Below, one piece after another: positions 322 to 50,029 of a stretch of DNA of 64,000 nucleotides (position 1 is the first letter of the stretch; every line of letters begins with the position of its first letter). Origin of the DNA: Malacoraja senta (lineage: Eukaryota); the NCBI GenBank assembly GCA_038087875.1, contig CM075978.1, positions 175,088,001 to 175,152,000 of the forward strand, given 5' to 3'. A model generated the notes under the pieces. That model was not told where the DNA came from. It was given only the letters and a program-made list of their open reading frames with translations, and did no database searches. The position numbers were made by a program, and so were the translations under genes.

Positions 322-376
322 ATGCTTTTTCGCGATGTGGTTCTGTTATTATCGTCGCTCTTGTTTATAAACGCAG
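322..376 (+). CDS. Gene A leader (signal peptide) exon
   Basis: ATG at 322, 18 mostly hydrophobic codons, ends NA-g|GTATTT in phase 1. The gene C leader has the same length and ending. Confidence 0.85.
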
Positions 377-3300
377 GTATTTTTCGATTTTTCTTTTGTT
401 TTCATCTTCTTACTGACCTACACCCTCTGTGATCTGCACCCGTATATCGAACGCACATCCATTTTCATGCATCTTTTAAAAGTGCGATTAATTGTGTCTG
501 TCCTCGTCTGTTATGGGATAATTTTTGATTTTCTTCTGCTACAGTTGCCGTTGATGCTCACTACCAAATCGATCAATCTCCGACGATCAAACACGCGATC
601 TTACATTCAAATATCACTCTCTATTGCATTATTGGACTATCGCACAATAGTCAACCTGTGGAATTTTATTGGTGGAAACTTGGCGAACAGAACGTTCTGC
701 AAACAGCTTCTGACAGTAGGAAGATATTTCTTCGTTTTAAACAAGGTGGAGCTTCCTTGCATATATTGAATATCCATGCAGATGATGCTGGAGTCTATTA
801 CTGCGGAGTAGGAATCCAGGGAAGCGAGATTGTGAATGGATCTAGCTCCAGAATTAAAGTCTTCGGTATGTGTAACAGTAAAAGCAAATGTGCTGCAAGA
901 TGGAGATGTTATTCTATTACTGTTCAATTCTATACTTCGGGAAAGCAATGTGGCCAGGTTTTCCATTGGAAGTACCCATGTTATATGTAATATTGTGTCT
1001 TAAGATCCCAGGACAACTGTCTAATTGGTTGATTTTCGGTTGTTAGTATGAGGATGTTGCTCCAAATTCACTGAAACATAGATTCCAACACAGTTACTAT
1101 CTTGACTAGTACTTCCCGAGGACGATTAATGCGGTCTAATATCTGCTTGTAATTTATATTGATCTTCTTTAAATCATTCAGAATTACGCGCTGGTGTTAT
1201 TTTAACACAGGTGTATCGTAAACCTTTTTCTTCACCAAATATTCAATGAAATTCCAAATACACAAAGGAAGAAATATTGCTGGAGTAGCTCAGCGGGTGA
1301 AGCCGCAACTCAGCAGACCATGAATAGGCGACGTTTTGGGTTGGGACCCTGCTTCAAATTGAAGCGACGGACGGGGTGGGGGTAGAGAGTTGGAAGAGAG
1401 GAGGGGGGGGGAGCTTTGGGTGTAATAGACCGACACAGTTGGGAAGCATTTCTTTGGACCATTTTATTTACAACTGCCGGTGCGGCATCAACCGTCACCC
1501 TGTTCCGGTCACTTCTCCCGTCTCTAACATTCCCCCTCATCATGGACCCGCCCTGCCGGCCTTCTGCTCTAGCTGGATCTTTTTTTATATCCAACGCGGT
1601 TTCAAATTGCAGGAGCGGTATCAAACGTCTCCTCCTCTCCCGCAGTAAACATAAAAGGCTACACCTGATATTCCTATGTTGTTTTTTTAATTTACCAATT
1701 AATTTAGAGTTCTTACTTTAAGAAAACTAAATAATATAGGGCGCTCATTCTGAGGTTTGAAAACAGAGCACATCTGTAAAAGTTGCGAATTAGTTAAAGA
1801 TAAACTGACCAATTGTTATTAAAAAATTAAACAGAGGTAGCAATTCACACTATTCGAAACAGTGGGCAACGATTGGAAACGCTAAATAAGTTTTCATTCT
1901 CCTCGGATGCTTGCTGTCGTGGATGTGTATAGAATCAGATTGCACGGCTGAGCACGATTTATTTTGTTGATATCCGAAAAACCGGCCGAAGTTGTGCTAA
2001 TCGACTGAACGTTTCCATAACCGTGCAATTATGAGGTCGCCGACCAGTATTGTAAAACATAGTTATGCTCGTGTAGTTGTGTTCCGGATCCCAAATACAT
2101 TTTCTGCTTTACATTTGCAGTTCCGCCAGCTCAGCTCAGAATCTCAAAACTGCCTGATGAAAACTCAACCACATTGAATCTCTTGTGTAAAACGGATGAA
2201 TTTTTCCCGGAGTCATTAAATCTTACTTGGTACCGAAATGGTATTGAGATTTTCGAGGACATAGATAGAACAGTAAAACTGACTATGAATGGATTATATG
2301 AAGTTTCCAGTCATTTAAAGGAAACAAGGACACTCCAGGGCGGATCGGTCTATACTTGCCAAGTTGCGCACCTCACTCTTCCTACACCATTGACTGGACA
2401 CTGGATACTCCAGTATCATGTTCCGGATTCCAAAACAGGTAACGAAGAAAACATTAGAATGTTCGATTGTAGCGGATTCAGATCGTCGTGTTTGGGAAGC
2501 GAACTGGCTTTGAAGGAGAGGATGATTGCTAAGTTGCAAAAGTATGGTATTTCTACCTTGCTCTCTTAATTATATTGTTAAAATTGTACTAAGATTTCAG
2601 ATTGTACTAAGTTGTAGTTGGAGCAGATAAAGCCCTTAACCGACTTGGTTAATCCATTTAGAGTATTAAGTCAATTTAAGTATAATACCTATCAGGAGAG
2701 ATGAGCCAGTGCAATGTTTATCCTGCGTTTTGTCGGAGATCAGCAACAAGTTTAATGTCGCTCGCGGCCATTTCTTCAGGAAATGCATTAAACTTCAGAT
2801 CCAGACTGACGTTCTTGCGCATCTGGTATTTAGAATGGATTCGCTGTGTAGCATCTCCGATGTTGACGACGGTATGGATAGCTTGTTTACTGAATTCATA
2901 ATGTGACCAATATTGATCGCTTTGGAAAAAAGGCGTTTGGTACGCTATGGCCAAAGTAGTACCACAATCGGAAAGCGTGGTTGTGCACTGGCTTTGGATA
3001 ATCAAAGTTTAAGGAGCAGGACCCCTTAAGTTGTTAAATCCAGATTTGTTCCAGCAGCACTTGCGAATGAAGATAGGAATAGGAGGATAGATCTGTGGAA
3101 TACTTGGCTAAAGATATAGTGGAAAAGGGGGATCGTAACATTTCTCAATCCCCGGGAGTAGTAGGGACATGGAGTGCTTTGCCAGTGATGGTGATGAAGA
3201 TAACTGGAAGTACGGCAATAGAGGAAGTTGGATCATGTACAGGAAGATGTGTTCGGCTTCACTTGGCATTTTTAGCACAAATATTGTGGCCCGATGGGCT

Positions 3301-6300
3301 CGTCCCTGTGCTGTTAAGTTATATGCTCTAACGATCACTTTGATGAAAAACTGCAAATTTATCAGCCCTATTATTATCGGGTGTTTGCCCATTGATGTAG
3401 GCAAATCCGAATGATTTAAGATTAATACTGTTTTAGTAGTTGGAGATTTCATGTAGAGTAATATTAATTCTGAAAATGTTAGTATGAAAGACAAATTGTG
3501 TCTAGGAAAGCATTTTGAGCCAGAATGCACGTAATCCAACCGCAACGTTGCTGCGCCGAATCTTAGGGCAATTTACGGCAATTATTTCGTCCAGTGGTTG
3601 GGGCTAACATTTTCTATAGCGTCCATTTCTTTAGGTATTAGGGCTGGTCGTGGATCGGGATTACATTCGTGTGGAAGTTAAGATACTGAATTGGGGAGGT
3701 TGCAAATCTATCGTAATATATGACCTGTCAAATTGAAACTGTGTTTACGGTTTGGCGAATCCTGTAAGTATGAACAACTGAGAGTTGGGGGCCGACGTGT
3801 CATTTCAGGGTGGAAGGAAATGGCAACGTTAGGGGATATCAGACTGTTTGGTGAAGCGCATGAAATCAGATGGGGCTCTTCGGAAGGTACATACAAGTGC
3901 TCAGGGTGGTTAAACGGAAATGAAAGATCACCAGTTCGCAGGATTAAATAAAGCACCAAGCCACATAATAACGACAATACGGAAGACGGTCTGTTCCAGA
4001 TCAAAAGGGCAATCTGTAACTGAAGCTGAAATGCGCATACCATTTTCTGTATAAAAATAACGTCACCCGCACATCTCTGATTCTTTCATATTTTAACCAT
4101 AGGAAAAGGATTCTGATTATCTATCCTGACTATGTCCCATTAATTCTAGAAAACATTCTAACTGCCCACAACCTACGATGCCCCAGAAAAAAATCCAAGG
4201 TTGGCCAAGCTCTCTTGATGGTCAATATCCTCTCATGCAGCCAGCATTCAGACAGTCATCGGGCACGCGGAGAGGCTATAATGTCCAACTTTCCCATGCC
4301 GACCTCGATGCCCCATCCACACAGGTTACACCTGCCTGCGTTCATCTCTCATCCTTCTAACCCTTTCCGAATATGTACCTGTCCAAATGTCTTTTAAATG
4401 TTGTTTTAGTAAATCTGTTCTACACTCTGTCAAAAGTCTCCACATTCTTGCCGTAATGGGGCGATCTAAACGGCAGACAACATTCCACACGCGGACTATT
4501 CAAAGTTTTTTAAAGCTGCAACATGGCTCCCACTCAGCACATGGTTCTTGCACTCAGTGCCACAACCGATGAAGGGAAAAGTATACCAAATTCATCCTTT
4601 ACCATGCTATCAATTTGTGTTACCGTTCTTAAGGAGCTATGTCCTTCGACCCAAGATCCAAAAATTCATCAGTGCTGTGGAAAGTTTTGCAAAACGTAAC
4701 AGAACACACTTGCTCAGATTAAACTGCATTTTCCACTTCTACACATACGTCCCTAATCAAACTGGACCTTTCCCTGTTTAGACTGGGAGTGCCATAGTGT
4801 CATGGACGTTGATCAGCTGGAATTTGTCATATATGTTCAGGACAACACAAGTGAGAGGTGTTGCATTTTCTGAGGTCAAACAGTGTGAGGACGCAGACAG
4901 TGTAAGGCAGGGCTCTACGGAGTGATGGGGAGCAGAGGGATCTAGAAGATGCAAGCATGCATACTTTCTTAAGAGTGTTTTCACAGGTAGATAGGGTGAG
5001 CAAGAAGGCGTTCGGCACATTGGGCTTCATCATTCAAAATATTTAGTATAGAAATTAGGAGGTCGTGTTACAGTTGTACGGGGCATTGGCGAGGCAACAT
5101 TTGGAGTATTGTATTCAGTTTTGACCACCCTGTTACAGGAAATATGCTGTTAAGCTGTAAAGGGTGCAGAGAAGATTTACGACGATGTTGCCAGGACTCC
5201 AGGGCCTGACGTATAGGGAGAGATTGAGCAGGCTAAGACTTTATTCCTTGTGCTACAGAAGGGTGAGGGGTGATCTTATAGAAGTTCGTCGCAAGAGAGG
5301 AACAGATAGGGCAAACGCACAGTATTTTGCTCAGTGTAGGGGAATCATAAAACAGAGGGCAAAAGTTTAAGGATGGAAAGATTTAATAGAAATCTGTTAG
5401 GGCAACTGATTTAGACAAATCGTGCTGAGTATATGGAAGGAGATGCCAGAGGAGGTAGTTGAGCCAGGTGAAATAACAACGTGTAGATGATATCTGGACC
5501 GGTGCATGGATAGGATAGGTTTAGAACGTCATGGGCAACGCGCAGGCACGTGGAACTAGTGAATGTTGGTCCACGTGGGCAACTTAGACAGACTGGCCTG
5601 TTTCCATATTGAACAACTATTTGATTTCATAAATGTTGGTGGGTGAACATTTAGGGACCAGTATCTACAGTTCTATTTGCTTGAAAATAATTTTGAATAC
5701 GCACAGGGCTGGTCCACAAGGTTGAAGTTCTAAGCCGTGCAAGGCCAACTTTAATGGTATTCGACAGGAATTTACAAACGTTTGGTGGAGGCTTGGAACA
5801 GACACAACCATCTGAAGAAGTGTCCCGACCCGTAAAATCACCTATCAATGTTCTGCAGAGATGCTGATTGATCAGCTGAGTTACTACAGCACTTTGTATC
5901 CTTTTATCTTACAAATCTTCAGTCGTGTAGGTTATTTGCGGCCAAAGCGGCTTCAGGTAAGTGGACTGCTCTTCAAAGTGTAATGGCGAGAGTTGCAAGC
6001 ATGCATGTTCATGTTAAAGTGGGTAAAACAAATGGGATTAAGGAAGACCAGATCACGTGCAAATTTGTGTCTCTGGTCAGGAAAAAAGGAGGCATGGGCC
6101 AGTTATAGGCAGTTGGGATGAAATGTATCCCCGAAGGGATTTAGGGGATTGAGGAGCATAGTTAAGAAGCAAATCAAACGGGCAGGAAGAGGCAATGGAT
6201 AATTATGGCAGATAATATTAAGTAAAATTTGAAGACATTTCGGGAGTACATAAAGGTGAAAAGGGTAACTAGACAGTGAGATAAAATCCGCTGTAACCTT

Positions 6301-7095
6301 TGACAGCCTTCCCTCCAACTCCAGCAATTTTATTAAAGTTAATTCGACCATTAGGCAGATCCATTTACATTTTCGCCAGAATCGCCTTCGGAAAATTCAA
6401 ATGTCACTTTTTTCTGTTTGCTTTGCACAAACGTTGAAATTATTTGTAGATTTCTGGGCTTACAATATATTACATCAGATTCAAGGGAGGGTGATTTTCC
6501 GAATTCAGGAGCTTCGATTTTTATATGTATCCTATGCTTTTCAATCTTACAGGTACTAAAATCATCAATTGCGTCAGGATAATATGCGGTTTAGTAACTT
6601 TACTACTGCCGCTTGGCATTGCAATGTGTTGTATTGCAAGAAAAAATAAAGGTAAAGAATAATTTAACACAATTAAGCATTTTGTTCAGGGGGCTAAAGC
6701 TCCAGAAAGGGAGGCACATGAACTCTCTATTCTCGGGGAATATAGCTTATTCTATCTTATCATAATGTTCGGCAAACATATTGTGCGCCGAGGGACCTGT
6801 TCCTGTGCTCTGTATTAATGTTTTATGTTACAATGAGTAGCCTTCATATTGCATCTGCGAAAATTAATTACCTTTCATGAAAGCATTCATATTCGCTATT
6901 CCGCACATTTTTAAGTGCACTAATATCCTACTGTCACGTGCTGTTCCCTCAGAACTGAAGATCTCGTCCAATTATGTATTCCCGAAAAAACACTGACTAG
7001 AATTAAATGACTGACGACATCAGCGTATTAATATCGATTCGGGATATAGCCATGTCTTTGCAGATGATCCATCGATCTATATTAACCACCAATGA
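322..7095 (+). CDS. Gene A: non-rearranging VJ-C1 Ig-superfamily receptor, activating type (SIRP/NKp30/B7-H6-like architecture), 274 aa; exons 322-376, 545-865, 2121-2438, 6553-6651, 7064-7095
   Basis: All introns are GT-AG and phase 1, and the joined frame is open. Leader [18 protein letters not shown]; V with [27 protein letters not shown]; C1 with [28 protein letters not shown]; [26 protein letters not shown] then RKNK; candidate tail [10 protein letters not shown]. The last exon is the least certain. Confidence 0.85.
545..865 (+). CDS. Gene A V-set exon including J-like G strand
   Basis: Acceptor ttttcttctgctacag, donor g|GTATGT, 321 nt. Has B-strand Cys, C-strand Trp and DxGxYYC. Confidence 0.93.
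1260..1640. mobile_element. Degenerate Penelope-terminus-derived element in gene A intron 2 (mirrored at about 26860-27240)
   Basis: tgctggagtagctcagcggg...gacgttttgggttgggaccctgcttca resembles the abundant PLE terminal repeat seen elsewhere in the window. Confidence 0.5.
2121..2438 (+). CDS. Gene A C1-set exon
   Basis: Acceptor tttacatttgcag, donor g|GTAACG, 318 nt. C1 hallmarks Cxxxx[18 protein letters not shown] and YTCQVAH. Confidence 0.92.
4790..5625 (+). mobile_element. CR1 LINE 3' fragment (RT C-terminus and 3' UTR); mirrored at about 22880-23710
   Basis: HLEYCIQF-like segment and [29 protein letters not shown], followed by a CR1-type 3' end. Confidence 0.85.
6553..6651 (+). CDS. Gene A transmembrane exon with intramembrane Arg
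   Basis: Acceptor ttttcaatcttacag, donor aaag|GTAAAG, 99 nt, phase 1/1. Encodes [33 protein letters not shown]. Confidence 0.85.
7064..7095 (+). CDS. Gene A candidate short cytoplasmic terminal exon ([10 protein letters not shown])
   Basis: Acceptor gtctttgcag, in frame with the TM exon, TGA at 7093-7095. No transcript support. Confidence 0.5.
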
Positions 7096-8680: not shown

Positions 8681-8966
8681 ATGTGCGCTAAATCTGAGTA
8701 AAACAGGAAAATTCCAATGCCGGTGCATGAAGAAAGGACAGGTATATATATGAATTCAGGCTAGATATCGATACCTCCACCCTTCGGCATGCTCCGTCGT
8801 TTAATGTGACGATTGACCTTAGCTCTGCATTTACCACTGCCAACCGAACGATTGACGGCTTTACTTATCTAATATATATTTCATCTCCTGATAGAAAATA
8901 TAAAAGGGAGAAAAAAGTCAATTTATTGCGCCTGCGCATAATGTATCAAATATATTGATGGCAAAG

Positions 8967-11393: not shown

Positions 11394-11638
11394 NNNNNNN
11401 NNNNNNNNNNNNNNNNNNNNNNNNNNNNNNNNNNNNNNNNNNNNNNNNNNNNNNNNNNNNNNNNNNNNNNNNNNNNNNNNNNNNNNNNNNNNNNNNNNNN
11501 NNNNNNNNNNNNNNNNNNNNNNNNNNNNNNNNNNNNNNNNNNNNNNNNNNNNNNNNNNNNNNNNNNNNNNNNNNNNNNNNNNNNNNNNNNNNNNNNNNNN
11601 NNNNNNNNNNNNNNNNNNNNNNNNNNNNNNNNNNNNNN
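11394..11638. other. Assembly gap (245 N)
   Basis: Run of N. Confidence 1.
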
Positions 11639-11877: not shown

Positions 11878-11994
11878 ACCAAGCAGAAACCGATGCATGC
11901 TAAAGTGATCTACGCTCCGCTCTTTACGGCAGGAAACAAGAAAAGAGAGCAAACAATTGTACGGATAATGCCACTGACAACTAACAGCCAATAA
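11878..11994 (+). CDS. Orphan terminal cytoplasmic exon with ITIM (TKQKPMHAKVIYAPLFTAGNKKREQTIVRIMPLTTNSQ*)
   Basis: Branch-like actaat plus ttcttcctcctaattttcatctcgtag acceptor. VIYAPL resembles the gene C LAYAPL, with Tyr at a similar exon offset (12 vs 13). AATAAA overlaps the stop codon. Confidence 0.55.
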   Translation, partial: TKQKPMHAKVIYAPLFTAGNKKREQTIVRIMPLTTNSQ

Positions 11995-21509: not shown

Positions 21510-21854
21510 GTCAGTATTTTTTCGGGAATACATAATTGGACGAGATCCTTCAGTTCTGAGGGAACAGCACGTGACAGTAGGATATTAGTGTACTTAAAAA
21601 TGTGCGGAATAGCGAATATGAATGCTTTCATGAAAGGTAATTAATTTTCGCAGATGCAATATGAAGGCTACTCATTGTAACATAAAACATTAATACAGAG
21701 CACAGGAACAGGTCCCTCGGCCCACAATAGGTTTGCCGAACATATGATAAGATAGAATAAGCTATATTCCCGAGAATAGAGAGTTCATGTGCTTCCCTTT
21801 CTGGAGCTTTAGCCCCCCTGAACAAAATGCTTAATTTGTTAAATTATTCTTTAC

Positions 21855-21953
21855 CTTTATTTTTTCTTGCAATACAACACATTGCAATGCCAAGCGGCAG
21901 TAGTAAAGTTACTAATCCGCATATTATCCTGACGCAATTGATGATTTTAGTAC
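21855..21953 (-). CDS. Gene B TM exon with Arg
   Basis: Protein identical to the A TM exon, with one synonymous change. Confidence 0.82.
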
Positions 21954-24900
21954 CTGTAAGATTGAAAAGCATAGGTTACATATAAAAATCGAAGCTCCTG
22001 AATTCGGAAAATCACCCTCCCTTGAGTCTGATGTAATATATTGTAAGCCCAGAAATCTACAAATAATTTCAACGTTTGTGCAAAGCAAACAGAAAAAAGT
22101 GACGTTTGAATTTTCCGAAGGCGATTCTGGCGAAAATGTAAATGGATCTGCCTAATGGTCGAATTAACTTTAATAAAATAGCTGGAGTTGGAGGGAAGGC
22201 TGTCAAAGGTTACAGCGGATTTTATCTCACTGTCTAGTTACCCTTTTCACCTTTATGTACTCCCGAAATGTTTTCAAATTTTACTTAATATTATCTGCCA
22301 TAATTATCCATTGCCTCTTCCTGCCCGTTTGATTTGCTTCTTAACTATGCTCCTCAATCCCCAAAATTCCTTCGGGATACATTTCATCCCAACTGCCTAT
22401 AACTGGCCCATGCCTCCTTTTTTCCTGACCAGAGACACAAATTTGCACGTGATCTGGTCTTCCTTACTCCCATTTGTCTTACCCACTTTAACGTGAACAT
22501 GCATGCTTGCAACTCTCGCCATTACACTTTGAAGAGCAGTCCACTTACCTGAAGCCGCTTTGGCCGCAAATAACCTACACGACTGAAGATTTGTAAGATA
22601 AAAGGATACAAAGTGCTGTAGTAACTCAGCTGATCAATCAGCATCTCTGCAGAACATTGATAGGTGATTTTACGGGTCGGGACTCTTCTTCAGATGGTTG
22701 TGTCTGTTCCAAGCCTCCACCAAACGTTTGTAAATTCCATTAAAGTTGGCCTTGCACGGCTTAGAACTTCAACCTTGTGGACCAGCCCTGTGCGTATTCA
22801 AAATTATTTTTAAGCAAATAGAACTGTAGATACTGGTCCCTAAATGTTCACCCACCAACATTTATGAAATCAAATAGTTATTCAATATGGAAACAGGCCA
22901 GTCGGTCTAACTTGCCCACGTGGACCAACATTCACTAGTTCCACGTGCCTGCGCTTGGCCCATGACGTTCTAAACCTACCCTATCCATGCACCGGTCCAG
23001 ATATCATCTACACGTTGTTATTTCACCTGGCTCAACTACCTCCTCTGGCATCTCCTTCTATATACTCAGCACGATTTGTCTAAAACAGTTGCCCTAACAG
23101 ATTTCTAATTTAAAAATCTTTCCATCCTCCCTTAAACTTTTGCCCTCTGTTTTATGATTCCCCTACACTGAGCAAAATACTGTGCGTTTGCCCTATCTGT
23201 TCCTCTCTTGCGACGAACTTCTATAAGATCACCCCTCACCCTTCTGTAGCACAATGAATAAAGTCTTAGCCTGCTCAATCTCTCCCTATACCTCAGGCCC
23301 TGGAGTCCTGGCAACATCGTGGTAAATCTTCTCTGCACCCTTTAACAGCTTAACAACATATTTCCTGTAACAGGGTGGTCAAAACTGAATACAATACTCC
23401 AAATGTTGCCTCGCCAATGCCCCGTACAACTGTAACACGACCTCCTAATTTCTATACTAAATATTTTGAATGATGAAGCCCATGTGCCGAACGCCTTCTT
23501 GCTCACCCTATCTACCTGTGAAAACACTCTTAAGAAAGTATGCATGCTTGCATCTTCTAGATCCCTCTGCTCCCCATCACTCCGTAGAGCCCTGCCTTAC
23601 ACTGTCTGCGTCCTCACACTGTTTGACCTCAGAAAATGCAACACCTCTCACTTGTGTTGTCCTGAACATATATGACAAATTCCAGCTGATCAACGTCCAT
23701 GACACTATGGCACTCCCAGTCTAAACAGGGAAAGGTCCAGTTTGATTAGAGACGTATGTGTAGAAGTGGAAAATGCAGTTAATCTGAGCAAGTGTGTTCT
23801 GTTACGTTTGCAAAACCTTCCACAGCACTGATGAATTTTTGGATCTTGGGTCGAAGGACATAGCTCCTTAAGAATGGTAACACAAATTGATAGCATGGTA
23901 AAGGATGAATTTGGTATACTTTTTCCTTCATCGGTTGTGGCACTGAGTGCAAGAACCATGTGCTGAGTGGGAGCCATGTTGCAGCTTTAAAAAACTTTGA
24001 ATAGTCCGCGTGTGGAATGTTGTCTGCCGTTTAGATCGCCCCATTACGGCAAGAATGTGGAGACTTTTGACAGAGTGTAGAACAGATTTACTAAAACAAC
24101 ATTTAAAAGACATTTGGACAGGTACATATTTCGGAAAGGGTTAGAAGGATCAGAGATGAACGCAGGCAGGTGTAACCTGTGTGGATGGGGCATCTAGGTC
24201 GGCATGGGAAAGTTGGACAGTATAGCCTCTCCGCGTGCCCAATGACTGTCTGAATGCTGGCTGCATGAGAGGATATTGACCATCAAGAGAGCTTGGCCAA
24301 CCTTGGATTTTTTTCTGGGGCATCGTAGGTTGTGGGCAGATAGAATGTTTTCTAGAATTGGTGGGACATAGTCAGGATAGATAATCAGAATCCTTTTCCT
24401 ATGGTTAAAATGTGAAAGAATCAGAGATGTGCGGGTGAAGTTATTTTTATACAGAAAATGGTATGCGCATTTCAGCTTCAGTTACAGATTGTCCTTTTGA
24501 TCTGGAACAGACCGTCTTCCGTATTGTCGTTATTATGTGGCTTGGTGCTTTATTTAATCCTGCGAACTGGTGATCTTTCATTTCCGTTTTAACCACCCTG
24601 AGCACTTGTATGTACCTTCCGAAGAGCCCCATCTGATTTCATGCGCTTCACCAAACAGTCTGATATCCCCTAACGTTGCCATTTCCTTCCACCCTGAAAT
24701 GACACGTCGGCCCCCAACTCTCAGTTGTTCATACCTACAGGATTCGCCAAACCGTAAACACAGTTTCAATTTGACAGGTCATATATTACGATAGATTTGC
24801 AACCTCCCCAATTCAGTATCTTAACTTCCACACGAATGTAATCCCGATCCATGACAAGCCCTAATACCTAAAGAAATGGACGCTATAGAAAATGTTAGCC

Positions 24901-27900: not shown

Positions 27901-28180
27901 AGATCGCGTGTTTGATCGTCGGAGATTGATCGACTTGGTAGTGAGCATCAACGGCAACTGTAGCAGAAGAAAATCAAAAATTATCCCATAACAGACGAGG
28001 ACAGACACAATTAATCGCACTTTTAAAAGATGCATGAAAATGGATGTGCGTTCGATATACGGGTGCAGATCACAGAGGGTGTAGGTCAGTAAGAAGATGA
28101 AAACAAAAGAAAAATCGAAAAATACCTGCGTTTATAAACAAGAGCGACGATAATAACAGAACCACATCCCGAAAAAGCAT
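21855..28180 (-). CDS. Gene B: inverted copy of gene A; exons 28180-28126, 27957-27637, 26381-26065, 21953-21855; terminal exon expected inside the gap; 1-bp deletion at the C1 donor
   Basis: L, V and TM exons are intact with the same splice sites as A. The C1 exon is 317 nt instead of 318 (aaacag|GTTACG vs aaaacag|GTAACG). It could be a frameshifted, secreted or alternatively spliced copy, or a sequencing error. Confidence 0.75.
26065..26381 (-). CDS. Gene B C1-set exon
   Basis: [21 protein letters not shown]...YTCQVAH. Confidence 0.88.
27637..27957 (-). CDS. Gene B V-set exon with GxG J motif (NGSGSRIKV)
   Basis: Open 321-nt exon with 6 substitutions relative to A. Confidence 0.92.
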
Positions 28181-28874
28181 ACTGAACTATAAAAATCATA
28201 CGTCCTACGTATTGGAAGCCTGAAATGCACTCAGTAATTGCTGAACTCTACATGTAAGTAAAGTATGATCTTGGTAAAGAGAAATAGAGTTAACTTTTCT
28301 GTTCGAAAGACTTGGTCAAATGGAACATGTTGCACAAGGCATTACCATATCTCTGCTGTGAAAAAAAGGGTACAGGGTCTGACGTGGACTGAAGGAAATC
28401 ACGTCCGATACGAAATGACACAATTGCAGCTGTTCAGAAATGAGCTTCTGTAAAATTCTGGAATCACCCTGTCGGAAGTGCATGGCATGTTCCACGATTC
28501 AAACACATATTTGCCATCCATCCAGACGAATCTTGTCTTTGCTGAGTTTACCAATGATCTTCATGCTAATGGCTGCAGTTTTATGTCAGAACAGAAAGTT
28601 AAAAGTCTTCCACATATGTAGAAACTAAAAGGAGTCGGACATCCGAAAATACTAGTAACCAGATAGAAAATGAGGTAAATGCGAAAATGAAAGCTTTAAA
28701 TATTTCTATCGGCCATTAATTGTTTGGAATGTGCCACCAACGTCCCAATACGTATTTAATATATAAATTATATCACTCTTGGGACCAACTGCACCAACGC
28801 TTCTCCAATGTACTATGTCCCATTCTTGACATATTCGTGGTAAAATTAAAATTCAAACCATGGATGCTGTCTGT

Positions 28875-34865: not shown

Positions 34866-36585
34866 AAGTTCAAGTTCAAGTTCAAGTGAGTTTATTGTCA
34901 TGTGTACCTGATAGGACAATGAAATTCTTGCTTTGCTTCAGCACAACAGAACATAGTAGGCATTGACGACAAAACAGATCAGTGTGTCCATATACCATTA
35001 TATAAATATATACACACATGAATAAATAAACTGATAAAGTGCAAATAACAGATAATGGGTTATTAATGTTCAGAGTTTTGTCCGAGCCAGGTTTAATAGC
35101 CTGATGGCTGTGGGGAAGTAGCTATTCCTGAACCTGGTCGTTGCAGTCTTCAGGCTCCTGTACCTTCTACCTGAAGGTAGCAGGGAGATGAGTGTGTGGC
35201 CAGGATGGTGTGGGTCTTTGATGATACTGAAAGTCTTTTTGAGGCAGCGACTGCGATAAATCCCCTCGATTGAAGGAAGGTCAGAGCCGATGATGGACTG
35301 GGCAGTGTTTACTACTTTTTGTAGTCTTTTCCTCTCCAGGGCGCTCAAGTTGCCGAACCAAGCCACGATGCAACCGGTCAGCATGCTCTCTACTGTGCAC
35401 CTGTAGAAGTTAGAGAGAGTCCTCCTTGACAAACCGACTCTCCGTAATCTTCTCAGGAAGTAGGGGCGCTGATGTGCTTTCTTGATAATTGCGTCAGTGT
35501 TCTCGGACCAGGAGAGATCTTCAGAGATGTGCACGTCCAGGAATTTGAAGCTCTTGATCCTTTCAACCATCGACCCGTTGATATAAACGGGACTGTGGGT
35601 CCCCATCCTACTCCTTCCAAAGTCCACAATCAGTTCCTTGGTTTGGTTGGTGTTGAGGGCCAGGTTATTGTGCTGCCACCATATGGACAGTTGCTCGATC
35701 TCTCTTCTATATTCTGACTCATCTCCATCAGAGATATGTCCCACAACAGTGGTGTCGTCAGCGAACTTGATGATGGAGTTCGCACTATGACCGGCTACGC
35801 AGTCATGAGTATAGAGTGAGTACAGCAGGGGGCTGAGCACGCAGCCTTGAGGTGCTCCCGTTCTGATTGTTATCGAGTCTGACACATTTCCACCAATACA
35901 AACAGACTGTGGTTTGTGAATGTGGAAGTCGAGGATTAAATTGCTGAGGGATGCGCAGAGACCCAGTTCTGCGAGTTTGGTAACCAGCTTGGAGGGGATG
36001 ATAGTATTAAATGCCGTGCTGTAATCAATGAATAACAGCCTGACATATGAGTTTTTGTTGTCCAAGTGGTCCAGAGCGGAGTGGAGGGCCAGCAAGATCG
36101 CATCCACCGTTGATCTGTTGTGGCGGTAAGCGAACTGCAGTGGGTCCAGGTTTTTGTCGAGGTAGGAGTTGATTTGCGCCATGATCAACCTCTCAAAGCA
36201 CTTCATCACCACAGGCGTTACTGCCACAGGTCGATAGTCGTTGAGGCACCTCACCTTACTCTTCTTGGGCACTGGTATAATTGATGCCCTTTTGAAGCAG
36301 ATGGGAACCTCAGACCTCAGAAGTGAGAGGTTAAAATGTCCGTAAAAACTCCAGCCAGTTGGTCCGCACAGGTTTTTAGAACACCAGGTATACTATCAGG
36401 TCCAGGCGCGTTTCGAGGGTTCACCCCTTTGAAGGATTTCCTGACGTCGGCCTCTGTCACTGAGACTGAAATACCATCACAGCGAATGGGGGCTCGGGAA
36501 GGTACATCGGTGTTCTCTCTATCAAAGCGTGCGTAAAACGCATTGAGCTCATCAGGGAGTAATGCCTCGCCGACATTCGAGCTGT
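34866..36585 (-). mobile_element. Rex1/Babar-clade LINE, 5'-truncated, 400-codon open RT frame (35070-36272)
   Basis: [73 protein letters not shown]. (AAGTTC)n tail at 34866-34887. Confidence 0.9.
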
Positions 36586-42018: not shown

Positions 42019-42150
42019 TTAGTTGTTATTTTTCACCCCGCTATATATTACACTTATTTCTTTATGTTGCCGTTTCAAATTCTTTGTCGAGCTTGACGTG
42101 TTCAAGGGAGCGTATGCCAGTTCATTATCAGCAGCAGCCACAATTGCGAT
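42019..42150 (-). CDS. Gene C terminal exon with two ITIMs
   Basis: IAIVAAADNELAYAPLNTSSSTKNLKRQHKEISVIYSGVKNNN*. Confidence 0.82.
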   Translation of the reverse strand: MAIVAAADNELAYAPLNTSSSTKNLKRQHKEISVIYSGVKNNN

Positions 42151-45100
42151 CTGTGCACAAATGTATGCTATTGTTAATTGGACAAGAAAATGACTAATTT
42201 CTCCGAGTACGACGTATCTATATTCTCAGATGTGTAGAGTAAAAGCGTGAAACGAACTTTACCTTTGCATACACAGGGCTCTCCACATGCTCTTCAGGTT
42301 TCTCATATTCTTTGCAGCGGACAAGATCCAAATGTGCGTACATCGGATTGCGGCTAACGTTCTCACCTTCTTCCTGGAAATTCATGAACTTATTTTAAGA
42401 TTAGTTATACTACAGATAAAGCTTTCGCGTGGAATGCACTGGCAAGAATAAACGAGGGACAATTATTTTTTGTTTGTCTCGAATGACTTATCGCACGGAG
42501 ACCAATTTCCAGAGTCTAATCGACTGCGGGGCAAACAGTCGCAACTGGACAGATCAATATGATAATTGCACATAATATGGAACATAGAACAGTACAGCAT
42601 AGGAACGCGCCCTTGGCATCGTGTTCAGCCCAAAATGTTTGTGCTGAACACGATGCCATTTTAAACTGATCTCATCTATCTGTACATGATCCATATCCGT
42701 TTTTCCTTGTGCATATGTCCATCTAAATGTCTATTAAACGCCACTATCGTGTCTGCCTCCACCAGCACACCTGGTAATGCCTTCCAGGCAAACAACAATA
42801 GCTATGTAAAGAACTTACCCCGTATACCTCCATCAAACATTCTCCCACACACCTTATAGCTATGCCCTCTAGCATTAGACATTTCTGTTCTGTGGAAAAG
42901 GTTCTGACGGTCTACCCTATCTATGCCTTTCATTCTATCAATTCTGCCCTCATGCTCCGAATTTCCAGAAAAAAACAATCCAAGTTTATACAACCCCTTC
43001 ATTTACTTGCACCTCTCTAAGCCAAGCGCACCTGATAAACCTCTTCTGCACCCTCCCCAAAGGCTTTCTGTAATGAGGCTACCAGAACCGCACGGAAATC
43101 TCCAAATGGGCCTTAACCAGAGTCTTATAGAGCTGTATCATGATTTATTGACTTTTATATTCAATGCCGTAGCAATGAAAGCAAACATATCATATGCCAT
43201 CTTTACCAGCCTATCTCTTCGTGCTGCCGTCTTCAGTGAGCTATGAGCTTGGACTCCATGACCTCCCTGCACATCAATTCACTTTAGCATCTTGACATTA
43301 TCCTTACATGCGCCATTCTAAGGTGCAACAGCTCAGACTGCTCGGGTTAATCTCCATCATGCTCCGTCTGCCATTTCTCCACCCACTTCTATCGATGATC
43401 TATAACCCTCTGTATCTTCCGACAGCCTTCCTCGCTGTCTGCAACTCCTCCTGTTCTGTTGTTCAGCAAATTTACTCAACAACCCATCTAGGTTTATGTC
43501 TACGTCATTTATATATATCACAAATAACAGAGGTCCCTGTGGAATTCCACTGATCACAGACCTTCAGGCAGATCTTCCTTCGACAAACCTCTGTCGCTCT
43601 GAAGAAGCCAGTTCTGAATTCATATCACCAAGTTACAGTGGATCATGTATATCTTGATCTTGATCTTTTGGATCAACCTATCATGAGGAACTTTATCACA
43701 AGCCTTCCTTAGATTCGTGTTTGCAGCAGCTACTGCCCTGCCTTCATCAATCTCCTTTGTCATCTGTTCAGAAAACTCAATTACATCAGTAAAACGTGTT
43801 AGACCGTGCTGGCTATCGCTAATTCGTCCATTCTCTTCCCAATGTCAGTAGATCCTCTCTTGACGAAGTCTTTCCAATCGGTACCCAACCACTAACGTGT
43901 GGTTAAACGATCTATATTTAGATCCAACTGGTTGAGCCTCGGATTCCCTCTACTTCCCTTCTTAAACAAAGAAACAGCATGGCCACTCTCTAGTATTCCG
44001 AAATCTCGCCTGTGGCTGGACAGGAAACAGTAAGGTGCAAATGAAAATATTCCTTTCACTACGCCTGGTGTAAACAATATATATGATATCTATAATAAAT
44101 GCGAACTCCTGTAAATGCATTTGTATTGTTCTTTATGTCCTCCTTTGTGTAGTGTACTGTGAAATTCACGGATTGGGAATACGTTCAAACAGAATAAGAC
44201 GTGGTCTCATTAAAACGGCTTGGTTTCAACAAAGGCACAACCCTGTCTCTACTTTCACAAATGGAATAGTCATATATTAAATTAGCCTTACCCAACTTTG
44301 TGTCCGATTTGTATTTACTGTATGCTTCTTTGCACCTGCTCGGAAAAATAAAATAGTGATAAAAGGCCGTGCGACATGGTGGGGGGTTTTGCACGCCAAG
44401 AACGTAATATCATGTGATAATTGCACGATAGAGTTTCACTGTATACGGCTTCACTACATATGTGTGAAGGCTTAAACCACGTTGTTTGTGCCACGCTTTT
44501 TCCAAAGTGTTGGACGACACAGTGGTGCAGCAGGTAAATGCGGAGTTTGAGGCATGTTCTCCCTGTGACCACGTGGGTTTCATCCGTTGCTCCGTATACT
44601 CCCACATCCCAATAATGTGCGGGTTGTGGGTTAATTGACCTCTGTAAATACCCCCACTGTGTATTGAGTGGATGCGAAAGTAGGTTAACGTAGAGCTAGT
44701 GTGAACGGATGATCGATGGCCGGCTTGGAATCGATGGGTTAAAAGGCCGGTTTCTCTGCGCTATCTTTCAACCAATGAAACACATTTTTATCACAAAATT
44801 CACAGATGTTCAACAGGTACAATTAAATGCTGGCTGCTATATGATAATGTGTCGAAATAATACATATAATTCAAAATATGTGATCATCAAACATTAGTCA
44901 CATGCAAAATGTAATATCTTCGTTAGTCGGTGCTGTTTATTATAATCATAATTTTTGCCCATACAAATGTTTCATTTCCTTTATTATCAAGAGAATCGCG
45001 TAATTACCAATATTATTATATTATAATATTATACTGAGATGATAATGTTAAAAAATGGATGAGAAACATACCTCTAAATATAATTGCCATCACGATGATA

Positions 45101-48100
45101 ACGATGCACATTAAAATTAACACTGCACCTCCGATACTTCCAGCGATTAGAGAAGCAGATAAACCCTCGACAGCTGTGGGAGGTTAAACCGATTACCAAA
45201 CGTTTATATTTAATTAAGTTATTTCAAAGTAGACTTTGCGGAAAACAAAGCAAGATATTTCAAATGTTCACTCAATGGATTTCACCAGAACCGCGTGGAA
45301 GGCGGCAGAGCCAGCAATTTCGCTTTATGGCGCGATTACGAGTGAAATAAATAGATCTTAAGTGAACCTTGTGGGATATTGACCGTTAGGAAACAGGAAT
45401 TGTAGAACATAATACATTAATTTGGATATATTCTGTTCACCAAATTTTGAAGGAGATGTTAATGTTACTGACGCTGGTCAGGAGTGAATCATTGCAGACG
45501 TCTTCTCCCCACTAACAGTCCCCAATTAATGCAAGAGCCAACAAGTTAGTTCTCATAGATAGACTGAAAATGCTGGCGTAACTTAGCGGGTCAGGCAACA
45601 TCGTTGGAGAAAATGGAGAAGTGACGTTTTGTGTCGGGACACTTCTTCAGACTGATTGTGGGGGGTGGGGGCAGAAGCAAGAAAAAAACGGCAGCAATCG
45701 GGACTACCACGATATGACCCCACGCAGGGCGGTTCCCCGTTAGGCCGACTGTTGGTTTGGGACGACGTTATCCCAAGAGGGGTACATCGTTGCGAATTGT
45801 GGGACTGGTAAATCGACATTTAGAGGAAGGGGGCAAATGGGAGGGGGCGGGACGGGGTGGGGGAGATGGAGAGAAGATGGAGCTGCGTGCTTGTGGACAT
45901 TACTAAAATGAGAGAATTCAACGTTCATGCCGCTGGCTTGTATGCTATACAAGTGAAATATGAGGTGCTGTTCGTCGAATTTGCTTTCGCCACTCTGTGC
46001 AAGGCAGGTCCTCGGACAGAAAGGTCAGTGTAGGAATGTAAAAGGGGAAGTAATATACTTAGCTACCGGGAGATCCAGTAGGTCTGAGCATGCTCAGCTA
46101 AATGGCCGCAGAATCCACACCTTTTCACACTATTGTACAGGACCCCGCATCCAGACCATCCGATGCAGTAGATAAGATTAGAGAAGGTGCATGTGAACTA
46201 CTGTCCAACCTGGAAAGACTGTCGGAGTCCGTGCATAGAGGCGAGGAAAGAGGTACAGTGGCAGGTATTACGTCTCCTGGCAGTTGTAGAGAAAAGTACA
46301 TCGGGTTGGGGTGTGTGTGTTTAAAGGGATGAATGAAACATAGTTGTGGAGGAACAGTCTGCAAAAGGCGGAAAGGCATGGAGATGTAAATATGTGATCA
46401 ATAATGGGATCAGGTTGGAGGCGACAGAAATGTCCGAAGATGATGTTTAGTATTGCGGAGGCTGGTGGGGTGAATGGAGAGAGAGAGAAAGGAAGGATAA
46501 AGCGGTATCAGAGATAGTCCAGGTACATTTGTGGGCATGGTGGAAATTAGTGGTGAAGTTGAGTTCTGCACGGGTGTAGGATGTAGTACTAATTGTCGAG
46601 GACTGGCCGTACTGTATCGCAAAGGAGGTCAGGGGGTGGTGAAAACACGACAGAGGTGAGGGGTGGGGTCAGGGGCGAGCAGTGGTGTAGAAGCAGGCTC
46701 GGGCGTGGGGACCAGAGACCTTCAGAGAGGAGGGGTTGGGAGGAGCTGTGCATGGGCGGGCAGGGGAGGGCTATTAAGGTCATAAGGAATGGTAGAATTA
46801 GGCAATTCGGCCCATCATGTCTACTCAGCAATTTTATCATGGCTGATCTATCTCTCCCTCCTAACCCCATTCTCCTGCCTTCTCCCAATGACCTCTGACA
46901 TCTGTAGTGGGTGTAGAGTGGTTAGGATCAGGACAATGTCATGGCCTCCGTTTCTTCCTTGAAAAGAGACCAACGATATCTACGAACAATCTCCTGTGTC
47001 TAGAGGAATTTGTCGTCACCCTCAATAACTTCTCTTTTGACTCCACTCACTTTCTCCAAGTTAAAGGTGCAGCTGGACACTCACATCAGCCACAGCTACA
47101 GGCTACCATTGTGTTGGTTACATTGTGCAGTGCTTGTTTAAAACATACGCTGTCGTTACCCCCGAACCCCTCCTCGAATACATCGTCAACTACGCTGGAG
47201 CTACTTCCTGCACTCGTGCAGAACTTATGGCCTTTATTAATTACTCCACTAACTTCCACCTTGCTCTCATTCTTTAGTGAACGTGATCCCCCCCCCACCC
47301 CTCCTCCCTCCCCCCTCCCCCACCCACCTCCCATAACCTTATCTACTGCATCCAGTGTTCCTGATGCGGGCTACCGTACAATAACGAGACAAAGGTAGAT
47401 TATGCGGCCGTTAAGCTAAAAACATGCATGAGGTCTGCCGAGGCCTATTGGATTTCCCGGTTGCTAACTATTTTAAATCCCCTTCCCACTCGCACACTGA
47501 CCTTTCTGTTCTGGGCATCCTGCGTTACCAGAGTGAGGCCACAGACACATTGGAGGAGGAGTACTTCATATTTCGGTATTTGCGCAGATTATTTTTAGGT
47601 AGCCTCTGTGTCTGTGTTGCAATTGGTTATCCATTTCAGCCATAAACGAACAAAAACAAAACCTTCACCGAGTTAATGGTGCAGCAATAGTGTTATCGAT
47701 TCACAACTCCAGATATCCAAGCTCAGGCCTGGCTTCGGAAACTGTCTGCATGGACATTGTACTTTCTCTGAGATTTTACCAAGGAACTGCTTGGTGAGTT
47801 AATTGATTATTTTTACATTATTCCTCGGGAAAGTGTGATGTTTGAGGGGGCATCAGAGTGGACTTGTAGATCACTTGAAAGGGAATGAGCTACAGGTGCG
47901 CGATCGATTGCGGGAACGGTATTGATGGAATCTTCTGGGAGGCAACATAGGCTGAATGGACTGTACAGCGTCCGTCTACGCTGGCATAAAATAGGAAAAT
48001 TGCACAAGTTCTAGGAAAATAAATTTGCTGCAGAAAATACGGTCTTTTAAAAATCCTCACATTTTATTTTTACTATTAATATTATTATTCAGTGGACTAT

Positions 48101-50029
48101 CCATTATACTATGTTATATTCATTATATCCATTATACTACGTTACCTTCATGAGGAACCGTGTAGTTGGCTGTTGCTGGAGTTAGCATAGAACGGTGAAT
48201 AATTTTACATGTGTAAACGGTTCCTTCTTTGACTGCCCGTTTCTCCTCTAAAGAGCTGATAACTTCATACAATCCGTCTGCCGTTGAATTTTGTTCATGC
48301 CGAAATCCAGATTGGATGACGGAACCATTTCTATGCCAGGTGAGATTAAATTCTTTCGGGTAAAACGCAGCCGTTCTGCACTGGATTTTCAGGAAATGAG
48401 TCGCAGCATTTCTAGATCGAACAGATACAATCTTCAGAGGAGAAGGGACAGCTAGGTAAAGAGAAATGGAATTAAAAGAAAGGGGAAAAGTCGATTACAT
48501 CATCCAATAGCATTTGTTCCAACGCTACTTAATTCCATCATAATTTTTAAATCGGGAGCCCAGATGAAGGTGTTCTTCAACGCAATTGACCCCCCCCCCC
48601 CCACCCTCCTTCCCTTGACATGCATTCCCTTGACATTTAATTTAAGAAAAGTGCACTAATTTGCACACTTGTTTCCTGTGCTAACATGCGCGAATCAACT
48701 TTCAAGTTTCAACTCTTCAAAGGCACAGTACTGTTGTGAATATTTCAACTTCCCAATATAATCAGTCATAAACAGTTGCAGACTTTGGCTTACAGAGAAT
48801 GCTATCACTAAAATTTCTTGTTTCTCCAATTCGGCGCAAGAAATCTAATTTATATTTCAATTAATTTGTGCAAGTAAAAACCTCGCTCTTTCAATTCACA
48901 GGATTATATGTTGATAACATTATCATTAGGAAAACATCAGGAGGATCCCCGCCTCGGCGTTCAGTGTCAAATTGAGTCCGTTGTATTTATTCATCTTACA
49001 CTCACTACCTTCAATATACTTCAACTCAAATATCATTGCAGTCATGCCCTCTGACCTACATTTTCAAACGAATCAATCTAGAATAATTTTCCAACGTTTT
49101 GCACATTTGTATTCTGGATTAAAGACTTTTGTGAAGCAAAATCCAAATTTGAGCTGCAACTAAAGTACCTAAGAAGGAACTGCAGATGCTGGAAAATCGA
49201 AGGTATACAAAAGTGCTGGAGAAACTCAGCAGATGCAGCAGCATCTATGGAGCGAAGGAAATAGGCAACGTTTCGGCCCGATACGTTGCCTATTTCCTTC
49301 GCTCCATAGATGCTGCTGCACCCACTGAGTTTCTCCAGCACTTTTGTCTAGCAACTAAAGTACCGTTCGCTCACCATATACGATCAGTTGCTCTCCTGTT
49401 CCCTCCCCAACCGTTCGGCCCGCTTGTTTTGCAAGACAATAGTATGTTCCGGCGTCCGAGACCGTGACATTCAGCAGGTGAAGGTAGGCGCCTCCTGCCC
49501 TTATGATGAAGATTTTCCTGCTATCTTCTTTCAGGAAGCCTTTATTTCCATCTTTCCACCAGAAAACCTTTAGGTTTGACAGATTTACATTGAAGGGGAA
49601 GGAACACCGACAGGTAATGTTTATGCCACTGATCACCGTCTTCTGAACAACATTCGATATCGTCTTGCCCGACCTGTTCTCAGCAGCTGTCAATAGATGG
49701 TGCACAATCCAGTTTAGTCATTGATATACAGCAATGGAAATTTAACACTGCTGGCAAATATCTTATTGCACGCAGAATAAATATATACGTTGAATTGAAC
49801 CGAATTATTATGCCCGCCTTTTGTGTCCTCGTAAAGGTTTCGTAAATTGCACTCCTTTCCAGAACTCATACAACAGCAATGACTTTATGGACAATTCAGC
49901 ATGACATTATAAGGTACAACTATCATATGAATTTGAAGACCCATAAATAAAAAGCAATAGAAGCCCTAGTTTACCCGCATTCAAAATTCCAAGGAAATAC
50001 ATCGTCCAAGGTGACACTTTCAGAAACAT
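42019..50029 (-). CDS. Gene C: non-rearranging VJ-C1 Ig-superfamily inhibitory receptor (SIRP-alpha-like tail), 353 aa; exons 50029-49975, 49686-49375, 48451-48146, 45173-45072, 44335-44292, 42373-42263, 42150-42019
   Basis: All introns are GT-AG, with phases 1,1,1,1,0,0 giving a 1062-nt open frame. Leader MFLKVSPWTMYFLGILNA; V ..WWKDG..DAGTYYC..GEGTGEQLIV; C1 QCRTAAFYPKEFNLTWHRNG..YTCKIIH; uncharged TM; tail motifs PMYAHL, PVYAKI, LAYAPL, VIYSGV. Confidence 0.88.
42263..42373 (-). CDS. Gene C cytoplasmic exon 2
   Basis: 111 nt, phase 0/0. EEGENVSRNPMYAHLDLVRCKEYEKPEEHVESPVYAK. Confidence 0.82.
42580..44020 (-). mobile_element. CR1 ORF2 remnant in a gene C intron
   Basis: HAVSLFKKGSRGNP, SGIPQGPLLFVIYINDV and NARGHSYKV. 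Confidence 0.85.
44292..44335 (-). CDS. Gene C cytoplasmic exon 1 (GAKKHTVNTNRTQSW)
   Basis: Acceptor ttttatttttccgagcag, donor GTAAGG. At 44 nt it supplies the required phase 1 to 0 switch. Confidence 0.7.
44520..44775 (+). mobile_element. tRNA-type SINE (HE1-like)
   Basis: gacacagtggtgcagcaggta...gtttgaggcatgttctccctgtgaccacgtgggtttc...gggttaaaaggccggtttc. Confidence 0.7.
45072..45173 (-). CDS. Gene C TM exon (uncharged)
   Basis: Acceptor cctcccacag, donor g|GTATGT. AVEGLSASLIAGSIGGAVLILMCIVIIVMAIIFR. Confidence 0.88.
45560..47640. mobile_element. Penelope-like fragments on both strands in the gene C C1-TM intron
   Basis: Terminal repeat at about 45560-45655; LEEFVVTLNNFSFDSTHFLQVKG (RT) and FKSPSHSHTDLSVLGILRYQSEA (GIY-YIG C-terminal part). 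Confidence 0.8.
48146..48451 (-). CDS. Gene C C1-set exon (not in the ORF track)
   Basis: Acceptor tttctctttacctag, donor g|GTAACG, 306 nt. AVPSPLKIVSVRSRNAATHFLKIQCRTAAFYPKEFNLTWHRNG...GLYEVISSLEEKRAVKEGTVYTCKIIHRSMLTPATANYTVPHE. Confidence 0.92.
49170..49350. mobile_element. Palindromic (fold-back) Penelope-terminus element with 14-bp target-site duplication
   Basis: TSD gcaactaaagtacc at 49156-49169 and 49351-49364. Internal inverted arms ..aaataggcaacgt / acgttgcctattt.. Confidence 0.85.
49375..49686 (-). CDS. Gene C V-set exon with J-like motif
   Basis: Acceptor ctattgacag, donor g|GTGAGC, 312 nt. Confidence 0.93.
49975..50029 (-). CDS. Gene C leader exon
   Basis: 55 nt, ends NA-g|GTAAAC like the gene A leader. 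Confidence 0.8.

Follow-up and report, generated by a model that had tools for sequence, protein, structure and literature searches.

A stretch of 64,000 nucleotides from the genome of Malacoraja senta (the window; GenBank assembly GCA_038087875.1, contig CM075978.1, positions 175,088,001 to 175,152,000) probably holds part of a multigene receptor cluster whose products are type I membrane proteins, members of a family that extends across the cartilaginous fishes and that would signal through the mechanism set out below. Two genes, A and C, are intact, and a third locus, B, is a recent inverted duplicate of gene A, not an independent gene. These features are real and lie far beyond chance. Each gene would encode a signal peptide, a short variable (V) domain with a germline-joined J-like strand, one C1-set constant domain, a stalk and transmembrane (TM) segment, and a signaling end. 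This reading draws on the observed gene structures, domain types, family membership and species distribution.

Non-rearranging VJ-C1 genes are raw material for ideas on the origins of antibodies and T-cell receptors (TCRs), and in this context the field points to SIRP, NKp30, PRARP and, in sharks, UrIg and UrIg2. The family described here would give the debate a new, experimentally tractable group that combines a germline-joined V domain and a single C1 domain with membrane ends that are either TCR-like or equipped with immunoreceptor tyrosine-based inhibitory motifs (ITIMs).

Structure of genes A and C

Immunoglobulin (Ig)-like exons were located by tblastn of a draft gene A protein against the window, and were found at three loci only: A on the forward strand and B and C on the reverse (Table 1, in which all coordinates are positions in the 64,000-nucleotide stretch). 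An earlier note on this DNA had described a shared layout of leader, single V+J exon, C1 exon and TM exon separated by phase-1 introns, and this layout is seen at all three loci, where the ectodomain exons are each in phase 1-1 with AG/GT borders. Throughout genes A and C the splice sites are canonical and the phases consistent. The same search gave no additional Ig-like exon between C1 and TM, leaving one C1 exon per gene. None of the modeled exons of A, B or C spans or abuts an assembly gap; the last exon of gene A ends 4.7 kb ahead of the gap at 11394-11638.

Gene A occupies 322-6651 in four exons, which encode in turn the leader, the V domain together with its J-like strand, the C1-set domain and the TM segment. 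Its V domain bears the signature LYC...FYWW...DDAGVYYC and its C1 domain includes VYTCQVAH. A cysteine occupies a juxtamembrane position and an arginine lies within the TM segment. The tail measures 8-11 residues, in agreement with the short tail predicted earlier; read through the GT at 6652, the protein is 267 residues long.

Gene C runs from 50029 to 42019 and comprises seven exons with a clean 353-residue open reading frame (ORF). The uncharged TM segment and ITIMs attributed to it in the earlier note were recovered, the tail carrying four tyrosine motifs: NPMYAHL, SPVYAKI, LAYAPL and VIYSGV. The small exon at 44335-44292 was identified via its likeness to KGRETKNSRNPTQ of Stegostoma P0161, and is the sole piece able to join phase 1 to phase 0. 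Within the intron between V and C1, positions 49157-49351 constitute a very high-copy repeat with a word depth in the millions; a contig from a related species (run X12, record 13) joins 49156 directly to 49352, so this repeat insertion is missing there.

Table 1. Positions of receptor exons, duplication arms and related fragments in the window.
Feature	Position	Strand	Remarks
Gene A leader exon	322..376	+	55 nt; ATG at 322, GT donor at 377; ends in phase 1; encodes 18 residues
Gene A V exon, including J-like G strand	545..865	+	phase 1-1, AG/GT; Pfam V-set 1e-8, Ig_3 1e-9; AF2 pLDDT 87.8
Gene A C1-set exon (YTCQVAH)	2121..2438	+	phase 1-1, AG/GT; Pfam C1-set 1.9e-12; AF2 pLDDT 91.9
Gene A stalk/TM exon with Arg	6553..6651	+	GT donor at 6652 may be used; read-through gives GKE and a stop at 6660-6662
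Inverted duplication arm 1, with gene A	1..6997		may continue left of the window
Inverted duplication arm 2, with gene B	21510..28501		ends exactly at the gap 21310-21509
Gene B leader exon (copy of A)	28126..28180	-	
Gene B V exon	27637..27957	-	6 substitutions relative to A, 5 of them non-synonymous
Gene B C1 exon	26065..26381	-	317 nt; 1-nt deletion in an A-run before the donor; donor +3 A>T
Gene B TM exon	21855..21953	-	peptide same as in A if in frame; 346 bp from the gap 21310-21509
Gene C leader exon (MFLKVSPWTMYFLGILNA)	49975..50029	-	78% identical to the leader of Pristis pectinata P0166
Gene C V exon with J-like strand (GEGTGEQLIVY)	49375..49686	-	phase 1-1; Pfam; tree groups it with ray sequences at 100/99
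Gene C C1-set exon (YTCKIIH)	48146..48451	-	phase 1-1; Pfam C1-set
Gene C TM exon, uncharged (LIAGSIGGAVLILMCIVIIVMAIIF)	45072..45173	-	phase 1-1
Gene C small cytoplasmic exon (AKKHTVNTNRTQSW)	44292..44335	-	phase 1 to 0; tandem acceptor 3 nt upstream could also serve
Gene C cytoplasmic exon with NPMYAHL and SPVYAK(I)	42263..42373	-	
Gene C last exon with LAYAPL and VIYSGV, then stop	42019..42150	-	
Orphan exon-like phase-0 ORF, VIYAPL then stop (TKQKPMHAKVIYAPLFTAGNKK...)	11878..11994	+	good acceptor; 240 bp past the gap 11394-11638
Decayed V exon, gene C lineage	53758..54021	-	both canonical Cys lost (NVTHLFPF, MYFHI); stop ahead of the G strand

Domain types and germline joining of V and J

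Pfam assigns the V exons to V-set/Ig_3 (E 1e-8 to 1e-10) and the C exons to C1-set (E 2e-12 and 4e-10). AlphaFold (AF2) models built from 14-row alignments reached predicted local distance difference test (pLDDT) scores of 87.8 for V and 91.9 for C1. In the V model strands A, A', B, C, D, E, F and G are present, and because the C' and C'' strands are absent and only 59 residues separate the cysteines, the domain is modeled as a short V. Foldseek searches with this model scored CD79b, Ig kappa V, TCR V, VNAR, NCAM (d1) and NKp30 about equally, and those with the C1 model ranked beta2/alpha2 of class II of the major histocompatibility complex (MHC) first; such fold searches discriminate poorly, the top E-values all being about 1e-7. 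Profile-based sequence searches of the PDB were swamped by multi-domain heavy chains and titin-like proteins, and their ranks say little.

In genes A, B and C the V domain and the J-like strand form one ORF within one exon, and no recombination signal sequence (RSS) of the heptamer-spacer-nonamer pattern CACAGTG-N12/23-ACAAAAACC occurs anywhere in the window. For these two reasons the genes are not rearranging, a rearranging Ig or TCR receptor was rejected, and the germline joining of V and J asserted in the earlier note stands. The GxG G strand that it ascribed to the genes is found in B (GSG) and C (GTG) and fails in A, which reads GSS; the V exons of A and B close with ...NGS(G/S)SRIKVF.

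Gene B as an inverted duplicate of gene A

When the window was compared with itself, bases 1-6997 matched 28501-21510 as reverse complement at 98.2% identity, the 127 differences being evenly spread; the full length of the duplication is masked by the gap at 21310-21509, across which the 3' end of B would have to be sought. Divergence between A and B is alike in exons and introns, and the ratio of non-synonymous to synonymous change (pN/pS) is 1.0 (seven non-synonymous and two synonymous differences). As assembled, and with the splice sites of A, gene B lacks one A before the C1 donor, which breaks the frame ahead of the TM exon and its arginine. Because the C1-to-TM frame is lost in this way, gene B is either a pseudogene, a secreted V-C1 form or the product of a homopolymer sequencing error. 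Thus, where three genes had been proposed, two distinct ones stand and the third is an apparently broken copy, and the TM arginine claimed for both A and B is confirmed in A, the corresponding exon of B being out of frame as assembled.

It is possible, if doubtful, that A and B are one locus assembled twice, either as two haplotypes or through a mis-join at the gap, in which case the window would contain two family genes and the frameshift in B would be allelic or a sequencing error. The arms are inverted and nearly identical, that of B stops exactly at an assembly gap, its frame-breaking change is a single nucleotide in a homopolymer run, and the uniform divergence of exons and introns, like the pN/pS of 1.0, would be expected under this account. 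On the other hand, two alleles would be expected to differ by less than the 1.8% seen evenly along 7 kb, the 14.5 kb between the two arms are unique sequence, and receptor clusters commonly carry recent inverted duplicates, the explanation of gene B adopted here.

A receptor family of cartilaginous fishes

An exhaustive HMMER search with the V profile recovered dozens of single-V proteins of 220-450 residues with a V-C1-TM arrangement, together with giant multi-Ig proteins. Family members come from at least ten sharks, three rays and Callorhinchus, the genera represented being Mustelus, Heterodontus, Heptranchias, Carcharodon, Chiloscyllium, Hemiscyllium, Stegostoma, Rhincodon, Cetorhinus, Scyliorhinus, Pristis, Hemitrygon, Mobula and Callorhinchus. 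The fetched relatives have in common a V signature, YWWK.GE...DSRK...LLNV...D(A/S)GVYYC...NGTGS.L.V, and a C1 signature, VPPTPL.I...C.TA.FYP..LNLTWYKNG...GLYEVSS...VYTCQVSH. After C1 they continue either with an uncharged TM segment and a long tail of repeated LTYAALDL...TVYAETK, or with an arginine near the outer end of the TM segment and a short tail. A Callorhinchus locus (L001) has the same layout of leader, one-exon V, C1, TM and several tail exons, and its flanks of 10 kb on either side contain family members only. The proposal of a chondrichthyan family with one V and one C1 domain and with both charged-TM and ITIM members is therefore borne out by relatives across sharks, rays and Callorhinchus.

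The family is already predicted in public gene sets, mostly as SIRP-like, under inconsistent RefSeq names. Most members are called SIRP-alpha-like; others are SIRP-beta-1-like, SIRP-gamma-like, NCR3LG1-like, Ig lambda-1 light chain-like, tapasin-related-like, TCR-beta-like, H-2 class II beta-like (that is, MHC class II beta-like), CDON-like or uncharacterized. No paper describing the family was found in the searchable literature, which does not reach some of the key papers. The suspicion that these genes are mis-annotated or uncharacterized agrees with both observations, and automatic names such as Ig lambda-like, TCR-beta-like, MHC II-like, tapasin-related-like and SIRP-like can mislead counts of immune genes in the genomes of cartilaginous fishes.

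Relatives or isoforms without C1, consisting of V, TM and an ITIM tail, also occur (P0090 'isoform X4' from Heterodontus, P0094, and P0116 from Scyliorhinus). Because all ectodomain exons are in phase 1-1, skipping of C1 preserves the frame and gives an NKp30-like layout.

Maximum likelihood trees of the V and C1 domains place genes A and C far apart. The V domain of gene C falls with sequences from Pristis, Hemitrygon and Mobula (100/99), a group nested in a clade of 14 members (100/100) to which shark genes belong as well; by this placement the window would most likely be assigned to a ray or skate. The neighbors of gene A are Heterodontus P0026 and Mustelus P0029 (98/88), and its branch is long (0.94 in the C1 tree). 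The two lineages predate the split of sharks and rays and belong to different ancient clades. Between them, A and C are 35% identical in V and 36% in C1. Since classical paired receptors share near-identical ectodomains, this low V identity and the membership of different ancient clades argue that A and C are not a tight pair of the classical kind, contrary to the pairing proposed earlier.

Signaling type does not follow ancestry closely in these trees. The 27 classifiable members divide into 13 with a basic TM residue and short tail and 14 with an ITIM tail, both types occur within single clades, and at least nine switches between them are required on the V tree. The ray proteins nearest to the inhibitory gene C are themselves of the arginine-TM type. 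To judge from these distributions, exchange of signaling ends has been frequent, which is what a receptor cluster evolving by birth and death would lead one to expect.

Several reptile proteins from turtle and lizard (P0015, P0025, P0042, P0123 and P0142) consist of three to six tandem V domains and each score 26-50 bits with the family V profile, above domain 1 of SIRP. Automatically named pIgR-like, titin-like or FcRL5-like, they may represent an uncharacterized multi-V family related through the V domain.

Relation to SIRP

Two independent family profiles were searched. Outside cartilaginous fishes, the best match in a first profile search was rodent SIRP-alpha at 131 bits, followed by a carp NITR at 70 bits (6.5e-14); in a second it was a turtle SIRP-alpha-like protein at 103 bits. 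When Callorhinchus P0086 is aligned to rodent SIRP-alpha by BLASTP, its C1 domain corresponds to domain 3 of SIRP and is followed by the TM segment and then by all four tail tyrosines in the same order. The tails of several members match that of SIRP-alpha at each of the four tyrosines. Tail-only alignments of four members to rodent SIRP-alpha gave z-scores of 6.8-8.6, a level reached by none of 500 shuffles. Among single-domain PDB matches, the C1 exon of gene C scores best with domain 3 of SIRP-gamma (41.8 bits) and domain 3 of SIRP-alpha (39.7), with an Ig light chain (36.9) and MHC II beta (35.9) lower; for that of gene A both SIRPs are in the top ten PDB chains, matched through two C1 domains.

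The architecture of SIRP is similar as well. SIRP shares with the family a non-rearranging V domain, encoded together with a J-like strand in one exon and placed ahead of C1-set sequence, and exists in an ITIM-tailed inhibitory form and a short-tailed activating form with a basic TM residue; the inhibitory form of SIRP has four cytoplasmic tyrosines in two ITIM-type pairs, to which the four of gene C may correspond. SIRP differs in its V-C1-C1 ectodomain with two C1 domains, and the V domain of the family is only weakly SIRP-like. The family is also far larger and more divergent, forming many clusters at 50% identity. Judged by these comparisons, the SIRPs would be the closest characterized relatives of a family that does not appear to be a simple orthologue of any SIRP gene, and a real deep common origin with SIRP seems to us about an even proposition, perhaps slightly better. 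The earlier note had set the receptors apart from SIRP; the difference in C1 number holds, while clear separateness does not, given the matches to SIRP-alpha and the alignable tails. Its anatomy was largely right, with SIRP independence, the "three genes" and the "paired set" overstated.

A number of observations weigh against kinship with SIRP or, more broadly, against the interpretation of the window as part of a functioning receptor cluster. The V profile gives domain 1 of SIRP-alpha only 13 bits, less than it gives a NITR V domain or the reptile multi-V proteins, and no SIRP is among the Foldseek matches listed (top 30 or 50) for V or C1. A tail-only search with residues 262-406 of P0086 against a set of 5.8 billion proteins returned only a Callorhinchus paralogue, and for the clade containing gene C the tail z-score against SIRP-alpha is just 2.7. 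As tails of the form xTYAxL...xxYxxV are common to many ITIM receptors, the match to the SIRP tail may be generic. The word prefilter of the homologous-protein search restricts which families were scored at all. SIRP has two C1 domains where the genes of the window and their relatives have one, and the basic TM residue is arginine, whereas that of SIRP-beta is lysine. Finally, the sequencing runs that contain gene C sequence behave as genomic DNA, not as transcripts: four of them, aligned to 44250-50040, are identified as DNA because coverage is even and contigs run continuously through the introns.

With the runs searched being DNA and so giving no RNA support, the loci might be decaying, unexpressed relics, the intact ORFs of A and C being left over in a cluster that is turning over. 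The broken state of B, the dead V exon and orphan exon elsewhere in the window, and the long branch of gene A would all suit such an account. It is nevertheless very unlikely, given that gene C retains a seven-exon ORF of 353 residues with all splice sites intact, that its V and C1 domains are 66-70% identical to ray proteins, and that its V exon is kept in the DNA of several related species.

NKp30 and B7 proteins

NKp30, the product of NCR3, resembles gene A in having a non-rearranging V domain and J-like strand in one exon, a TM arginine and a short tail, and is a serious rival as to the V domain. The G strand of the family, NGTGSxLxV, presumably resembles the J-like strand of NKp30. In the Foldseek list for the V model, NKp30 from three primates takes ranks 5, 12 and 25 (E 4e-7 to 1e-6). 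Eight NCR3 genes have been reported in the nurse shark (MT914154-914161; PMC12227049), and the genes of the window could in principle belong to such a multigene, highly divergent, non-rearranging VJ family of sharks and rays. C1 would then be an optional or lineage-specific addition, as the C1-less relatives and the frame-preserving loss of C1 would allow, and the likeness to SIRP would be secondary.

We consider this identification unlikely. The fold match to NKp30 is no better than those to Ig kappa V, TCR V or CD79b, NKp30 is absent from the top 60 PDB sequence matches of the V profile, and none of the named family members among the proteins searched is called NCR3. The defining architecture of NKp30 has no C domain, the VJ domain being followed directly by stalk and TM, whereas A, B and C each carry a C1-set exon.

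The V-C1 ectodomain also matches that of B7-H6, and some members are automatically named NCR3LG1-like; the V domain of PD-L1, at 42 bits, is one of the highest-scoring single domains that the V profile matches in the PDB. That the genes encode B7-H6-like or other B7-family ligands and not signaling receptors is extremely improbable all the same: tails rich in ITIMs, like short tails combined with basic TM residues, are marks of receptors and not of B7 ligands, and the family carries a J-like GxG strand. Neither C1 exon has B7-H6 in its top PDB sequence matches, where SIRP domain 3 does appear.

Antigen receptors, UrIg and other innate receptors

With TCR and Ig light chains the family shares a V(J)-C1 ectodomain, and its V fold matches the V domains of Ig kappa, TCR beta/gamma and VNAR. 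Gene A resembles a TCR chain further in its juxtamembrane cysteine, basic TM residue and minimal tail, so that it presents the full layout of such a chain without RSS: split leader, germline VJ, one C1 domain, and the membrane features just named. The differences are that V and J are separate and flanked by RSS in the rearranging chains, and that the V domain of the family is short, lacking C' and C'', and that some of its members have ITIM tails. The family could be a surviving membrane-bound, non-rearranging relative of the ancestor of antigen-receptor chains instead of a side branch of SIRP, which we regard as quite unlikely. If it were so, gene A would be a closer model of the receptor that preceded the RAG transposon than the secreted UrIg or the C1-less NKp30.

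UrIg and UrIg2 are elasmobranch genes that are antigen-receptor-like and non-rearranging; UrIg is secreted and consists of VJ and three C domains, and UrIg2 has nine to eleven C domains (PMC12227049). They are similar to the family in their single-exon VJ, split leader, subsequent C1-type domains and restriction to cartilaginous fishes, and the C domains of UrIg2 are among the PDB matches, its V domain not being among the top V matches. Unlike the family, they have three or more C domains and no reported split into activating and inhibitory forms. Membership of UrIg or UrIg2 was rejected on the count of C domains, each gene of the window having a single C1 exon. The paper describing them makes no mention of the present family (PMC12227049).

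The NITRs of teleosts and the MDIRs of skates are, like the family, multigene and fast-evolving innate receptors of fishes with activating and inhibitory members, and the carp NITR noted above is a distant match to it. NITRs have V-I or V-only ectodomains and MDIRs have V types like those of CD300 and TREM. Neither group is known to have a C1-set domain, and identity with either was rejected for this reason.

Proposed signaling and turnover

For the receptors of the window we infer adaptor coupling, phosphatase recruitment, expression and a ligand. Gene C would be an inhibitory member: phosphorylation of its tail tyrosines (YAHL, YAKI, YAPL and YSGV) would recruit SH2 phosphatases of the SHP type and so dampen activation, a sequence of events modeled on SIRP-alpha and other ITIM receptors. 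Gene A would be of the activating type. By analogy with other receptors that combine a TM arginine with a near-absent tail, it would associate with an adaptor that carries an immunoreceptor tyrosine-based activation motif (ITAM) and a TM aspartate, of the FcR-gamma, DAP12 or CD3-zeta type, and would need this partner with its acidic TM residue both to arrive at the surface and to signal. The position of the arginine near the outer leaflet resembles that in FcR-gamma-coupled receptors, and the C1 domain together with the juxtamembrane cysteine suggests lateral pairing.

The family as a whole would turn over by birth and death, with the dead V exon, the orphan ITIM exon, the LINE (long interspersed nuclear element) insertions and the repeated switches of signaling type as its traces. 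If this mechanism is correct, the family would show that paired activating and inhibitory signaling on a V-C1 scaffold had already diversified in the oldest living jawed vertebrates.

Other elements of the window

The orphan ORF at 11878-11994 may provide gene A with an alternative tail of the inhibitory kind, or be what is left of a different gene. To connect it with gene A, a further exon between the two would be required, perhaps one inside the gap at 11394-11638. The decayed V exon of the gene C lineage (Table 1) directly adjoins the reverse-transcriptase ORF of a LINE (52608-53748, forward strand).

Further LINE fragments lie at 60164-63784 (forward), 35070-36272 (reverse) and 17340-18706. 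Encoded among the fragments, copies of which are 76-79% alike within the window, are a GDSL-esterase/OSK-like domain in one ORF, an endonuclease (Exo_endo_phos_2) and a reverse transcriptase (RVT_1).

Three G+C-rich stretches, at 18758-19401, 30459-31112 and 56755-57427, contain long overlapping ORFs on both strands that are rich in proline, glycine and arginine. The stretch at 30459-31112 has no Pfam match, and the stretches probably represent a repeat family or a CpG-rich element.

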